A program made the position numbers and the translations under genes. A DNA stretch of 64,000 nucleotides from sequence record PQ227241.1; one strand, 5' to 3'. Below the pieces are notes generated by a model, which did no database searches, was not told where the DNA came from, and saw nothing but the letters and a program-made list of their open reading frames with translations. Position 1 is the stretch's first letter, and every line of letters starts with the position of its first letter. Shown here piece by piece: positions 1,066 to 56,280 of this stretch.

Positions 1066-3261
1066 TTAATAGAAGTCAGAGATGAGTCGATCGTTATTTT
1101 TATCAATAAGGAAAATACCTAGGGACTCTAAGGTTAGATAGAATACACCCATAGTATTTCCAATGATAGTTCTAACGTCAGCAACACGCGTAATAACTTC
1201 TGGAATACGACCAGTTTCTACTACTGTACTCGGGATATGGAAATCACCAATACTGGTTTTATTTTCTTCAGTAACCCATGCTTGAATACGAGCAGCTAAT
1301 TTCTTATCTTCGATACCATCAATCCATTCTTTGATCGCAGTTTTATTATTAAGAGTAACTGAGATCTTTACATGTGAATAAGGTGGATCACCAGCGTCAC
1401 CAAATGACGGAGCAAATACAGTCTTCCACACCAATCCCTTTTTATGAGTTGAGTTATCTTCAGATTTATAAGATTCAGGTCGTTTAGTTTGACCACTTGT
1501 AAGATACTCGGCTTTACCACTTCTAACAGACTCAATAATTTCTCTTTCGATATTACCGGCTTCTTTTAGAATTGAAGCTAAGTCGATTTTCTCTTCAGCC
1601 TTTACCGTCTTAATAATATCTTCCATGAGTTTTTTAGCACGACTATTAATCTTCTTAGGTACTTTACTATCCCTTAGCCCCACGCCTTTAATCTCCATCC
1701 GAGATTCATTAAACATCACCCCTTCTTGGGCATCCTGTGATGCAAAGTAATGTTTAGAACGAGTAGTTAAGGCCAGTACTGCGAAATAAAATTCGTTCTT
1801 CATTGCAAATAGACGAAGCTTATCTTTAGATACACCCATATTAGCGGATTGAATCGCTAAGATATGCATAACTACTTCAGATACTAGAAACACTAGTGCA
1901 AATACTAGTCGTTTAGCTTCATTGCTAAAAGTTACTTTACCAAAGAATTCCTCAACCCACCATTGTAATGTAAACATAGTGGAGTCAGTATCTGAAATAA
2001 CAGCAGCTCGCCTATATACCGTTGGAAAAGCATGAATACTTGATGGTACACATTTAGTCAAGAAGAAAGCTTCAATCAATAGACGATATTCATTAAGAGT
2101 TTCAGCGATATTTCGACCAGTTGCAAAAATTTGATTCAGTGTATCTGGATCAGATTCTTTTAGTTTAGCTTTAGATCGACCTTTAACAGTATCAAAGCAA
2201 ATAAAGCTAGCCAAAAGATCCATATCACCATCATAAGTTGAATATTCTTCTTCAGTGATGATTTGTTCTTTTGTTCCAACCTGGCTTAATTTAATTAGAA
2301 AGCTCTTGATTAATTCTTTATTGTATTTATATAAGTGATATAGATCACCTACATACATAACTGCTGCTCGTTCGACTGGTGTCATCCCAGTAGCTAGTTT
2401 TAAAATCTGTGCCGTGTAATACTTATTTTGCCAATAGTGTTTAGTTGAATAAAGAACCATATCAACTACTTCTTCTGGCGTTGGGCAATGTAGATTAAAA
2501 TTAGTTACTGCTTTTTGAATTAACTCCATATCAGCTACATTAATAATATTTACTAAATTAGCTTTTGTGATTTCCGGAGTATAATAATGCCTATTACCCA
2601 TAATGAATTTTTCATTATTTGAGTTAGCATAAGAGGTACCAGTTCTACAAGTAGATGTTAAACTAGAGTGTGTGGACTTATAATAAAGAATAGTGGCAGC
2701 AGATACCGTACCTCCTGAATATGAGTTATTGTTAATTTTGAAGTTTTCTTGTTCACCTTTACGTACTTGTGCAAGTTCTGTTTTAATTTGTGAATTCTCT
2801 TTATCGCCGGCCTGTAGGAAAGCAGCTGCTTCACGTTCAGCCTGCATCTGCTCACCTTTAACACGCTTACGGTTTTTCACACCTTCAGCAATATAGATGG
2901 AGTGCGTCGACTGTCTAACAGACTCTGGTAAATATGCGGTCATTGATGGAGATAATAATAGATTCTGTTTCTTAACACGGTTAAGGAAAGCCATAAATGA
3001 AACAGTCTTTAATTCCCTATCACCAAACTTATTTTTATCTAGGATAGTTGCTACTGGGTTACGAAGTGCATATTCGCCATTTTGACGTAATTGTTCTTTA
3101 ACAAATTCTTTACATTCTTCTAAACTAATATTTAATTCATCTTTTGTCATTAATTGAAGATATTTGGCATTATCATCAAGACATGCATTAATGATATCAA
3201 TATCACGATGGTAATCATTGACATCTTTTAAAAACGGATTTGGTTGGGCAAATGCGGTCAT
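1066..3261 (-). CDS. Family B DNA polymerase, split subunit (phiKZ gp50-like)
   Basis: Motif B-like KINNNSYSG and motif C-like ISDTDS are present; no exonuclease motifs seen; matches the known split polymerase of phiKZ-like phages. Confidence 0.85.
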   Translation of the reverse strand: MTAFAQPNPFLKDVNDYHRDIDIINACLDDNAKYLQLMTKDELNISLEECKEFVKEQLRQNGEYALRNPVATILDKNKFGDRELKTVSFMAFLNRVKKQNLLLSPSMTAYLPESVRQSTHSIYIAEGVKNRKRVKGEQMQAEREAAAFLQAGDKENSQIKTELAQVRKGEQENFKINNNSYSGGTVSAATILYYKSTHSSLTSTCRTGTSYANSNNEKFIMGNRHYYTPEITKANLVNIINVADMELIQKAVTNFNLHCPTPEEVVDMVLYSTKHYWQNKYYTAQILKLATGMTPVERAAVMYVGDLYHLYKYNKELIKSFLIKLSQVGTKEQIITEEEYSTYDGDMDLLASFICFDTVKGRSKAKLKESDPDTLNQIFATGRNIAETLNEYRLLIEAFFLTKCVPSSIHAFPTVYRRAAVISDTDSTMFTLQWWVEEFFGKVTFSNEAKRLVFALVFLVSEVVMHILAIQSANMGVSKDKLRLFAMKNEFYFAVLALTTRSKHYFASQDAQEGVMFNESRMEIKGVGLRDSKVPKKINSRAKKLMEDIIKTVKAEEKIDLASILKEAGNIEREIIESVRSGKAEYLTSGQTKRPESYKSEDNSTHKKGLVWKTVFAPSFGDAGDPPYSHVKISVTLNNKTAIKEWIDGIEDKKLAARIQAWVTEENKTSIGDFHIPSTVVETGRIPEVITRVADVRTIIGNTMGVFYLTLESLGIFLIDKNNDRLISDFY

Positions 3262-53884: not shown

Positions 53885-53937
53885 TAAAAATATTACTGAT
53901 TGTATAATACTATGTAAGAAGTCATGTCCATACGTTC

Positions 53938-54014
53938 GCGCTCATAGTTCAGTTGGTTAGAATACCCGCCTGTCACGCGGGTGGTTAGGGGTTCGAGTCC
54001 CCTTGGGCGCGCCA
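53938..54014 (+). tRNA. tRNA-Asp(GTC)
   Basis: GCGCTCA/TGGGCGC, loop CTGTCAC, G73, CCA. Confidence 0.97.
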
Positions 54015-54020
54015 TTTAAT

Positions 54021-54053
54021 TCCGTGATAGCTCAGTCGGTAGAGCAAGTGACT
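54021..54053 (+). pseudogene. 5' half of tRNA-Asn (exact duplicate of 56205-56237)
   Basis: 33 identical nt ending just before the anticodon. Confidence 0.9.
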
Positions 54054-54066
54054 TTTACGATTTCAT

Positions 54067-54153
54067 TGGTAAGTACCCGAGTGGTAGCAGGGAGCGGACT
54101 GTTAATCCGTTGGCGAAAGCCCACCGTAGGTTCGAATCCTACCTTACCAGCCA
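54067..54153 (+). tRNA. Atypical tRNA-Asn(GTT) with long variable arm (Tyr-like body)
   Basis: TGGTAAG/CTTACCA, D-stem CCC/GGG, loop CTGTTAA, 15-nt variable region with GGC-GAAA-GCC, G73, CCA. Confidence 0.9.
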
Positions 54154-54237
54154 AATTCTAAAGAGTAGCTTCGGCTACTCTTTTATGTTGCCATGGGTTA
54201 TCTTATGAATTAAAATGATTTACTTGAGAGCACACTC

Positions 54238-55245
54238 ATGTTTGAATTACTATTATCGCCAGATATAGGCGAAGAGTTACCCTTGGTTGGATTTAATGAA
54301 ATTATTAAATTAGGTGATCTACCTGTGGCACTAGCTGGTACTATGTCATATGTGGATGGAAATACACTATATGTTGGATCTGGACATCATACTGAAGGAC
54401 AAACAGCCGCAACTGTATTCAGACGTTTTACCATATCACCATTCGCAGATGCAGGTGCAACATCTTCTGGAACATTCCTACCAGGTGTATCCTTAGGATT
54501 TGGAACATTACATAAGAATAACTTTATTGTTTATGGCGGTATTACTGGATGGAACGCGGCGGGTAATGGTGGTACGGGGACATCTAACTTTATACAACAT
54601 TTTGATATAAGTACAGGTAGCAGGGTTGAACGATATAGTGGGCCTGTACCATTTTGGGGTACAGCATCCGCATCAGATGGTAATGATCTTATTTTGTGTG
54701 TAAACCCAGTTGGGGTAAATACAATGCGGTTAAAACCATCGGGTAAGACATGGCTTAGTGGACAAGATTATTCAGGTGGTGCTCGTTCAGGTCAACAGTT
54801 ATTCTTCTATAATGGTTACTTTTATCATTTTGGCGGCTGGGATAATACAAAGAACATACCTAATCTTGAAGTTTATCGATATAATGCAACTACCTTAGTA
54901 TGGGAGCAAACACCTTGGATGATTATACCTGCTGATAAAGGAACAATCTGGCAAGGTAACGGTTATGTAGATGGAGAATATTTTAATTATATTAATGCAG
55001 TTGATGTCAATGGCGTAACTAAAATGTTTGCACAACGTTTTAACATTAGGCGTCGTAAATGGGCTGAACCATTAGAACTTGGCATAGGGTTCCTTAATAT
55101 ATCGTCAATAGCTAAAGGTCCGGATAATAGCATGATCATTGTAGGTGGATCTAAAATGCCAGTTGGTGGTGGAGCATACATGTTGAAAAGCCAATTGTTA
55201 TCAGGTATCTATCAGGTAAAACTAGCACCATTAATCATTGATTAA
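54238..55245 (+). CDS. Kelch-like six-bladed beta-propeller protein
   Basis: Repeated units such as LYVGSG, IVYGG, YHFGGW, IIVGG at roughly 50-aa spacing. Confidence 0.75.
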   Translation: MFELLLSPDIGEELPLVGFNEIIKLGDLPVALAGTMSYVDGNTLYVGSGHHTEGQTAATVFRRFTISPFADAGATSSGTFLPGVSLGFGTLHKNNFIVYGGITGWNAAGNGGTGTSNFIQHFDISTGSRVERYSGPVPFWGTASASDGNDLILCVNPVGVNTMRLKPSGKTWLSGQDYSGGARSGQQLFFYNGYFYHFGGWDNTKNIPNLEVYRYNATTLVWEQTPWMIIPADKGTIWQGNGYVDGEYFNYINAVDVNGVTKMFAQRFNIRRRKWAEPLELGIGFLNISSIAKGPDNSMIIVGGSKMPVGGGAYMLKSQLLSGIYQVKLAPLIID

Positions 55246-55530
55246 AATAATAATATTTATAACTATTTAGATAATTATACTGGCACGATGATATTATGTA
55301 AGAGTACTATACTAAAGTATTCTTAAATCTATCCACTAAACACACTCGGTGGTAGAACTTATTATAGAGTGTGTCTAAATGCCAGGGGTTTGCCACCCCT
55401 GGCTATATTCATTGTTACTATTATAAATTCATTTATAGATGAGAAAAGGTTTTATCACCTTTTCAAAATCGGCATTTGATTCTAGTTAAAAAAACTGAAT
55501 CTATGCTACATTGTAATAAAGGAGTCTATT

Positions 55531-56204: not shown

Positions 56205-56280
<76 letters not shown>

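Follow-up and report, generated by a model that had tools for sequence, protein, structure and literature searches.

Can a bacterial-type tRNA with a long variable arm be an asparagine tRNA? In bacteria, a long variable arm is considered to be a hallmark of the tRNAs for leucine, serine, and tyrosine (and selenocysteine) only. The question is raised by an 87-nt gene at positions 54067-54153 of a 64,000-nt stretch of the sequence record PQ227241.1, the whole of which is called the window here. The gene combines the asparagine anticodon GUU with a body that resembles bacterial tRNA-Tyr. Judged by its sequence, it encodes a tRNA of class II with the anticodon and the acceptor end of a tRNA-Asn. 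RNA from infections with the phage phiKZ revealed that this class II tRNA is real, transcribed, and end-processed to its mature size. Comparison of genomes places it in an old and widespread family, which is almost confined to phages. In the phiKZ-like phages it is probably a working tRNA-Asn that is carried as the replacement cargo of a homing-endonuclease cassette.

The program ARAGORN called a tRNA-Asn(gtt) on the plus strand with exactly these bounds, as one of seven tRNA genes in the window. The Rfam tRNA model (RF00005) scored 55.8 bits with the gene, compared to a gathering score of 29 (E = 2.5e-9), and the minimum-free-energy fold is a cloverleaf with an extra GGC-GAAA-GCC hairpin. The acceptor stem, UGGUAAG/CUUACCA, contains U1-A72 and G2-C71 as its first two pairs, the discriminator is G73, and the CCA end is encoded. 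The D arm consists of a CCC/GGG stem of 3 bp with the loop GAGUGGUAGCA, the anticodon arm is GCGGA-CUGUUAA-UCCGU, and the T arm is normal. Class II is defined by a variable region of more than 10 nt with its own stem-loop, and here 14-15 nt with the GGC-GAAA-GCC hairpin were found. All elements of the tRNA-Asn identity set are present, i.e., G34, U35, U36, G73, and U1-A72. A tRNA-Tyr is expected to have GUA, A73, and G1-C72; the gene has GUU, G73, and U1-A72 and therefore does not encode a tRNA-Tyr, despite its Tyr-like body. When compared with tRNA-Ser, it has the G73, and the variable stem comprises just about 3 bp; SerRS does not read the anticodon and calls for a long arm with an extended stem, and the variable arms of serine tRNAs are longer than the stem of about 3 bp found in tRNA-Tyr. 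A further rule concerns GatCAB, which rejects D loops with the antideterminant U20a/b; the D loop of the gene is of the Tyr type and sits on a 3-bp stem, so that its numbering in relation to this class I rule is ambiguous from the sequence (PMC2811023). The original prediction, a model's reading of the DNA letters, had described the anticodon GTT, the length of 87 nt, the CCC/GGG D-stem, the variable hairpin, U1-A72, and G73, and the results of ARAGORN, Rfam, and folding are in full agreement with this description.

The references for the comparison of scaffolds were E. coli tyrT and phage tRNA-Tyr genes. In the alignment of the D arm and the anticodon arm, the gene is a close match to both E. 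coli tyrT and the tRNA-Tyr of the Ralstonia jumbo phage FLC4-3B. Common to the gene and these bacterial-type tRNA-Tyr are the class II shape, the 3-bp CCC/GGG D stem, the GAGYGG D loop, the short capped variable hairpin, a purine at position 26 followed by a GC-rich anticodon stem, and a CUGU..A anticodon loop. Stem, loop, and hairpin support the Tyr-like body that had been predicted originally. The proteobacterial Tyr type is represented by the D arm and the layout of the variable hairpin, but not by the first pair, the discriminator, and the third anticodon base. In addition, the D loop of the class II tRNA-Asn ends with AGCA and not with AAA, and a genuine tRNA-Tyr(GTA) is often found beside the class II tRNA-Asn in phage loci. 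The whole-length identities to phage tRNAs for Tyr, Ser, and Leu have medians of 0.65, 0.62, and 0.60, respectively, and are only weakly discriminating; phage tRNA-Tyr are highly diverse. Therefore, the label "Tyr-like" rests on the alignment with the proteobacterial type of tRNA-Tyr. The nearest relatives of the class II tRNA-Asn family are class II tRNA-Lys, with identities of 0.67 overall and 0.72 in the D arm. A blastn search with the 87-nt tRNA against E. coli genomes yielded no match.

With the class I tRNA-Asn, an intact gene of which is also present in the window (Table 1), the class II tRNA shares the anticodon loop CUGUUAA, G73, U1-A72, and the encoded CCA. The two differ in the length of the variable arm (14-15 versus 5 nt), the D stem (3 versus 4 bp), and the total length (87 versus 76 nt). 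FLC4-3B has the CGGA/UCCG anticodon stem of the class II tRNA in its class I tRNA-Asn. In this related jumbo phage (L006), genes for tRNA-Asp, class I tRNA-Asn, and class II tRNA-Tyr(GTA) are arranged in tandem at positions 110-382, and the 20-nt anticodon arm GCGGACTGTTAATCCGTTGG is common to its class I tRNA-Asn and the class II tRNA-Asn of the window.

Further members of the family were searched with a pattern comprised of a Tyr/Ser-type D arm, the loop CTGTTAA, a long variable region, and a T loop; the anticodon GTT was thus required, G73 and U1-A72 were not. The pattern matched in 22 contigs of IMG/VR, many of which are jumbo phages with large tRNA arrays. The cellular genomes that were scanned represent 185,579 bacterial and archaeal species (596 Gb), and they contained a match in only one contig, a 10.8-kb piece of a metagenome-assembled genome with a phage-style array of tRNAs for Val, Tyr, class II Asn, Pro, and Lys. 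All matches, with lengths of 85-91 nt, were called tRNA-Asn by ARAGORN. For 20 distinct members RNAalifold yielded the class II cloverleaf, and 17 of the 25 pairs exhibit compensatory double changes. Covariation was found in all four stems and in the variable stem, three pairs of which are compensatory, while the CCC/GGG D stem and much of the D loop are invariant. GTT does not vary among the aligned members, in part owing to the pattern, and the pair U1-A72 is present in 19 of these 20 members. After correction of two one-base register errors in the ARAGORN calls, U1-A72 and G73 were found in 21 of the 22 members, whereas the tRNA-Tyr(GTA) genes from the same loci have G1-C72 and A73 without exception (17 of 17). 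All class I tRNA-Asn genes of these loci also have G73. Therefore, the acceptor end agrees in identity with the anticodon rather than with the scaffold. Among the 22 fetched stretches, 17 showed no tRNA-Asn gene besides the class II gene, which in one contig (L026) occupies the asparagine slot in an array of 30 tRNAs. To judge from these sequence patterns, selection keeps the structure, the Asn-type acceptor end, and the anticodon across many phages.

Two other kinds of long tRNA-Asn(GTT) were observed, one with a class I-like D arm and a variable arm of 20 nt (L022, 4225-4313), the other with a Leu-like D arm (L028, 8188-8269), suggesting that the asparagine anticodon may have reached long-arm bodies more than once. 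Two contigs with a class II tRNA-Asn also carry a tRNA with the amber suppressor anticodon CTA, which ARAGORN labels "tRNA-Pyl" (L027, 235-308; L041, 3391-3464), and a third contains a tRNA-like gene of 98 nt that was called with a four-base anticodon (L021, 7929-8026).

The same scan with CTYTTAA revealed class II tRNA-Lys in 31 viral contigs (L044-L074), with the anticodon CTT or TTT. These tRNAs have G1-C72 and either A73 or U73. Isolated phages with a class II Tyr-like tRNA-Lys(CTT) are CcrColossus (L005, 300-389) and the Xanthomonas phage BUDD (L007, 283-372), and in BUDD a class I tRNA-Lys(CTT) is encoded just upstream of the class II tRNA-Lys(CTT). Long-arm tRNAs for Thr, Cys, His, Gln, Trp, Pro, and Ile were encountered incidentally in uncultivated phages. 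The literature that was covered, which left out most subscription journals, contained no account of phage tRNA-Asn or tRNA-Lys with a class II body, of their family, or of the split gene discussed below, so that an earlier description is possible.

Expression of the gene could be studied because 31-mers of the tRNA are present in RNA runs of at least five studies. Four runs were compared with positions 53930-54240 of the window, and all four stem from phiKZ infections, as indicated by a C at position 54085. In two of them the class II tRNA is covered contiguously together with the spacer and the truncated tRNA gene that precede it (54020-54162 in run X28 and 54028-54162 in run X1). In the Nanopore cDNA run X32, the 5' adapter adjoins position 54067 and the poly(A) adjoins position 54155. 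Because positions 54154-54155 are genomic A, the 3' end of the RNA is at or just past the CCA. The tRNA-Asp encoded upstream behaves alike, with the adapter adjoining position 53938 and the poly(A) adjoining position 54014. In the phiKZ runs, the word depth of the class II tRNA is about one quarter of that of tRNA-Asp, and in run X32 the RNA depth is about 400-fold lower past position 54160. A gene that is not expressed or processed would have contradicted the original prediction; the RNA from phiKZ infections has the exact 5' end and a 3' end at the CCA. The truncated gene at 54021-54057 is co-transcribed between tRNA-Asp and the class II tRNA, and its words are common to a host tRNA-Lys and to other tRNA-Asn copies.

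The genomic context was unraveled by comparison with related phages. The region is 100% identical in the phages OMKO1, Churi, fMGyn-Pae01, and HUST_1, and the gene is present with at least 90% identity in 24 phage records. The copy of phiKZ differs by 1 nt and is annotated in RefSeq as PHIKZ_t02, tRNA-Asn, and that of PA1C differs by 3 nt. Psa21, a jumbo phage of Pseudomonas syringae that belongs to a different genus, contains an 88-nt version with 90% identity, and six of the nine positions that differ from the window constitute three compensatory pairs. GTT, U1-A72, and G73 are present in every one of the copies of phiKZ, PA1C, Psa21, and the OMKO1 type. In contrast, the phiKZ-type isolates PA7, SL2, and KTN4 lack the class II gene.

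In these genomes two loci are of importance, namely, locus A behind the tRNA-Asp gene and locus B, which in the window is at 56205-56280. The window contains the class II gene at locus A and the intact class I gene at locus B, whereas the order is swapped in phiKZ, with the class I gene behind tRNA-Asp at locus A and the class II unit at locus B. There, PHIKZ297 and PHIKZ296, the latter encoding an HNH endonuclease, flank the 5' half of a class I tRNA-Asn gene, a spacer, and the class II gene. In a three-way alignment, PA7 and the window have an intact class I tRNA-Asn gene at locus B, while the gene of phiKZ is interrupted after ...GACTGTTA by about 750 nt, precisely within its anticodon loop. 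This insert comprises spacer, class II tRNA, terminator hairpin, PHIKZ296, and a short tail; next come the remaining 3' half of the split gene (TAATCACTGG...GGAGCCA) and the common downstream sequence. The flanks are near-identical in phiKZ and in PA7 and the window, so that locus B exhibits a presence/absence polymorphism. The left junction of the cassette recurs at a second tRNA-Asn locus, i.e., at locus A of the window. PA1C has the same layout as phiKZ, and the two halves of its split gene carry matching changes in the acceptor stem (TCCGCGA and TCGCGGA), which indicates that they formerly constituted one working gene. The genomes of PA1C and 124.01 contain only the split halves and the class II gene, leaving the latter as their only tRNA-Asn. 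PA7 and SL2, in turn, have both loci intact, with neither the class II tRNA nor the HNH gene, and in KTN4 an unrelated region without a tRNA is found at the position of locus B.

PHIKZ296 matches the Pfam family HNH_3. Its close homologs are confined to phages with the class II gene, namely, about ten phiKZ-type records (at least 95%), the PA1C group (87%), and Psa21 (63%). In Psa21 the HNH gene is located directly downstream of the class II tRNA, and a barely recognizable remnant of a class I D arm is present upstream. An endonuclease open reading frame (ORF) within the insert is thus present in phiKZ, PA1C, and Psa21, but not in the window. The adjoining remnants of class I genes decay, while the class II gene keeps a perfect cloverleaf. 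The phiKZ insert is not a group I intron: such an intron has a ribozyme core, a U at the 5' splice site, and a G at its 3' end, whereas a permissive Rfam search found the tRNA only and no intron or ribozyme, and the insert ends with ...AACA(TA) and not with G. Free-standing homing endonucleases in phage tRNA clusters are well known, e.g., SegB of T4 and the HNH genes F-TflI, II, and IV of T5. The phiKZ insert resembles these systems, in which a small HNH or GIY-YIG gene lies among tRNA genes, in its HNH gene, its presence/absence polymorphism between close relatives, and its presumed target in the tRNA region. It differs from them in that it splits a tRNA gene in the anticodon loop and brings along a structurally different tRNA of the same specificity.

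Several additional observations concern this junction and its neighborhood. In Psa21 (L075), the decayed class I remnant lies about 40 nt upstream of the class II tRNA (1363-1450, minus strand) and begins with TGGTAAA-TAGCTCAG. Its acceptor strand TGGTAAA resembles the TGGTAAG of the class II tRNA, unlike the TCCGTGA of the split gene of phiKZ. In kmuB (L077, 3117-3153), the tRNA-Asn gene behind tRNA-Asp ends at position 37, which is the junction point of the cassette; the genes beyond it are unrelated and lie on the other strand, as if a rearrangement or deletion had begun at the same breakpoint. In unrelated uncultivated phages, an HNH gene (PF01844) or an ORF with a similar C-terminal helix-turn-helix adjoins a class II tRNA-Asn gene (L034, 7099-7512, minus strand; L035, upstream of 877; L025, 913-1089).

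The features of the two loci in the window are summarized in Table 1. The truncated gene is identical to positions 56205-56237 of the intact class I gene over 33 nt and then has the G34-to-T wobble change. In phiKZ and PA1C, too, this 5' half stands in front of the class II gene. The terminator of locus A comes directly after the class II gene in the window. The respective hairpin is the one found 3' of the class I tRNA-Asn at locus A in phiKZ, and it is likely the terminator of the transcription unit of tRNA-Asp and the class II tRNA-Asn, although a consensus terminator scan did not flag it. A homolog of PHIKZ296 was found neither in the window nor in the whole OMKO1 genome, and because it is present in the relatives, the window seems to contain a remnant of the cassette without the endonuclease. 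The original prediction was right about the gene itself, and it overlooked both the class I 5' half upstream and the status of the gene as cargo of an HNH cassette.

Table 1. Features of the two tRNA-Asn loci in the window.
Feature	Position	Strand	Description and evidence
Class II tRNA-Asn(GUU)	54067-54153	+	87 nt; ARAGORN, Rfam, fold, family covariation, RNA ends
tRNA-Asp(GUC)	53938-54014	+	Upstream neighbor in the tRNA cluster, defines locus A; ARAGORN, Rfam, RNA
Dead class I tRNA-Asn 5' half (positions 1-37)	54021-54057	+	G34 changed to T at 54054, reads TTT; alignment
9-nt spacer CGATTTCAT	54058-54066	+	Left cassette edge, leader of the class II tRNA; junction identical in phiKZ locus B
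Hairpin AGAGTAGC-TTCG-GCTACTCT and T run	54162-54186	+	Sequence, phiKZ alignment, drop of RNA depth
Intact class I tRNA-Asn(GUU)	56205-56280	+	76 nt, locus B, site split in phiKZ; ARAGORN, Rfam, three-way alignment

How could such a tRNA function, and how did it reach its present location? The class II tRNA would decode the asparagine codons AAY. Asparagine codons represent 6.2% of the codons in the long ORFs of the window, and 70% of them are AAT. In E. coli, asparagine identity consists of the anticodon and G73 and can be transplanted into the body of tRNA-Lys (PMC9976931). In Pseudomonas aeruginosa, Asn-tRNA is made through a non-discriminating AspRS and GatCAB (PMC2330236), and GatCAB needs U1-A72 (PMC2811023, PMC9976931). 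What the original prediction had stated about this pathway is borne out by these papers. In this host, the non-discriminating AspRS would attach aspartate to the class II tRNA, and GatCAB would then carry out the amidation. The features that are fixed in the family, i.e., GUU, G73, and U1-A72, would be all that the asparagine pathway is known to read, and the remainder seems to drift with compensation.

In the phiKZ-like phages, a mobile cassette of spacer, class II tRNA, terminator, and HNH gene would enter the anticodon loop of a class I tRNA-Asn gene and thereby destroy it. The class II tRNA would make use of the transcription unit of the broken gene and restore the lost decoding capacity. 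The HNH enzyme presumably targets class I tRNA-Asn genes, and the class II gene would be poorly recognized owing to its different sequence outside the anticodon loop. In the OMKO1 lineage, the cassette would have been inserted at locus A behind tRNA-Asp, and later the cassette would have lost its HNH gene and the broken gene its 3' half. A likely route of this loss is a recombination between two similar repeats of AGCCA and terminator, as the AGCCA, AT-rich sequence, and hairpin behind the class II gene resemble the stretch behind the class I gene. Insertion at locus A and deletion between the repeats would yield exactly the structure of the window, with the 5' half, the spacer, the class II tRNA, and the terminator of the locus left behind. 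It had been proposed originally that a tRNA-Tyr was re-programmed to asparagine alongside a canonical copy. The canonical copy was verified, while a re-programming within this phage is at odds with the age and distribution of the family.

Several points weigh against the view that the class II tRNA is a working tRNA-Asn carried by a homing cassette. Bacterial GatCAB inspects the D loop, and the tail of GatB is near the variable loop (PMC2811023); as both loops are altered in the class II tRNA, transamidation could be impaired. The amino acid that the tRNA is predicted to carry is deduced from its identity elements, and the activity of the HNH protein, its target site, and its homing are predictions as well. 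HNH genes are common in phage tRNA clusters, and some of the cases of adjacency to the class II gene elsewhere (L034) may be coincidental. The window lacks the HNH gene, and its membership in the cassette family is based on the shared junction. The RNA data are assembled contigs from phiKZ and not raw reads of the phage in the window, and they reveal presence and ends of the RNA, not its quantity. In addition, the HNH account explains the movement of the gene in phiKZ-like phages, but not why the wider family exists.

The choice of the scaffold is addressed by another explanation, which is compatible with the replacement cargo and which we regard as possible rather than probable. As had been suggested in the original prediction, the class II body, with its different D loop and long variable arm, might resist host nucleases that cut tRNAs, and translation of AAY codons would persist when the tRNA-Asn of the host and the class I tRNA-Asn of the phage are cleaved. 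AriB is neutralized by phage T5's own versions of three tRNAs, its second monomer has been modeled on U16-U17 of the D loop, and the exchange U16C impairs cleavage (bioRxiv 10.1101/2025.02.04.636281). The T5 variants that neutralize PARIS and retron nucleases (bioRxiv 10.1101/2025.02.04.636281; PMC11555353) and the class II tRNA-Asn are alike in that a phage-encoded duplicate of a host isoacceptor, including tRNA-Asn(GUU), could sustain translation; they differ in that T5 alters class I tRNAs by a few point changes where they are cleaved, whereas here the whole scaffold is changed and the resistance is putative. A role in counter-defence would fit the long-arm versions that phages carry also for Lys (in 31 contigs) and Thr(UGU), and the fact that a class I gene of identical anticodon is often the neighbor of the long-arm copy (BUDD; L021, L032). 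It would also fit that the OMKO1 lineage retains the class II gene despite its intact class I copy and the loss of the HNH gene. However, the motif U36-A-A-U-C|C, at which AriB acts in E. coli, is retained in the copies of phiKZ and the window, long-arm versions exist also for Cys, His, Gln, Trp, and Pro, which are not known as AriB targets, and the idea presupposes a nuclease for tRNA-Asn in the P. aeruginosa hosts. A combination of both ideas is more speculative and somewhat more doubtful. It states that phages systematically rebuild the isoacceptors that are attacked by nucleases (Lys, Asn, Thr) on a class II Tyr-like body, which escapes the nucleases and is still accepted by the anticodon-reading class IIb synthetases and GatCAB. 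In phiKZ-like phages an HNH homing element would have taken up one of these tRNAs; as the element destroys the class I tRNA-Asn gene of its phage, the phage would have become dependent on the copy of the element.

It is quite unlikely that the tRNA is a functionless passenger, i.e., that it travels along neutrally with the HNH element or is a duplicate in decay, transcribed only due to its position in a tRNA operon. Its absence from PA7, SL2, and KTN4 indicates that it is dispensable in the laboratory. However, the perfect cloverleaf is maintained by compensatory changes across genera next to decaying remnants, the RNA is precisely processed to its mature size, the gene was kept after the loss of the HNH gene, and in several genomes it encodes the sole tRNA-Asn.

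We consider it very improbable that the class II tRNA is charged with tyrosine or serine and recodes AAY codons, or that it is an uncharged decoy. The class II body, the long variable arm, and G73 as in tRNA-Ser would be in line with such a function. Precedents also exist: nematode nev-tRNAs combine a class II body with a foreign anticodon, their acceptor identity follows the body (Ser or Leu), and they recode. Allo-tRNAs likewise unite a long-arm body with the anticodon of a class I amino acid and are charged according to the body, with Ser or Leu, so that they recode (PMC5389517). In the class II tRNA-Asn, in contrast, the acceptor end follows the anticodon, and normal decoding is therefore expected. 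A73, the major determinant of bacterial TyrRS (PMC9976931), is replaced by G73 in 21 of the 22 members, and the first pair is U1-A72 as in tRNA-Asn. The Tyr-like variable stem is shorter than the arms of tRNA-Ser. PA1C, 124.01, and many tRNA arrays have no tRNA-Asn gene besides the class II gene, and because asparagine accounts for 6% of the codons, a proteome-wide substitution would be costly. The recoding of AAY codons by a tRNA mischarged with Ser or Tyr, which had been envisaged in the original prediction, is disfavored by the acceptor ends and by the frequent role of the gene as the sole source of tRNA-Asn.

That a tRNA-Tyr gene was misread in sequencing or underwent a recent A36-to-T point mutation can be dismissed: although a single base separates GTA from GTT, none of the relatives has the GTA and A73 that would indicate an error at position 36, about 24 independent phage records and 22 metagenomic contigs agree in anticodon, G73, and U1-A72, and GTT is also read in the RNA contigs.

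A conserved and expressed class II tRNA-Asn family that is almost exclusively found in phages, together with a parallel and larger class II tRNA-Lys family, indicates that a very different body of the tRNA can be tolerated by the systems for asparagine and lysine, or be used to exploit them. The family could serve as a natural test case for the share of tRNA identity that resides outside the anticodon and the acceptor end, for the way in which GatCAB and the transamidosome handle a long arm, and for the question whether re-scaffolding is an answer to tRNA-cutting defences. The split tRNA-Asn gene of phiKZ would be a clean example of a selfish endonuclease element that carries the replacement for the gene it has broken. 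PhiKZ is usually credited with six tRNAs (PMC8244752), and the RefSeq annotation and the RNA data add a seventh. GenBank records and annotation pipelines already label the class II gene as plain "tRNA-Asn."

Two minor observations can be added. The incidental long-arm tRNAs for Thr(TGT), Cys(GCA), His(GTG), Pro(TGG), Gln(TTG), and Trp(CCA) were found at the sites L027 788-870, L041 2829-2911, L044 3614-3695 and 3787-3870, L067 5631-6463, L065 7516-7596, and L072 8603-8688. Contig L067 has consecutive long-arm genes for Lys, Asn, and His, with two long-arm Pro genes close by. In the window, the intergenic space at about 55246-55530, between the homologs of PHIKZ298 and PHIKZ297, lies between the two tRNA-Asn loci, and an abundant non-coding RNA of about 100 nt from the 3' untranslated region of PHIKZ298, which falls into this space, has been identified by Grad-seq (PMC8545117).

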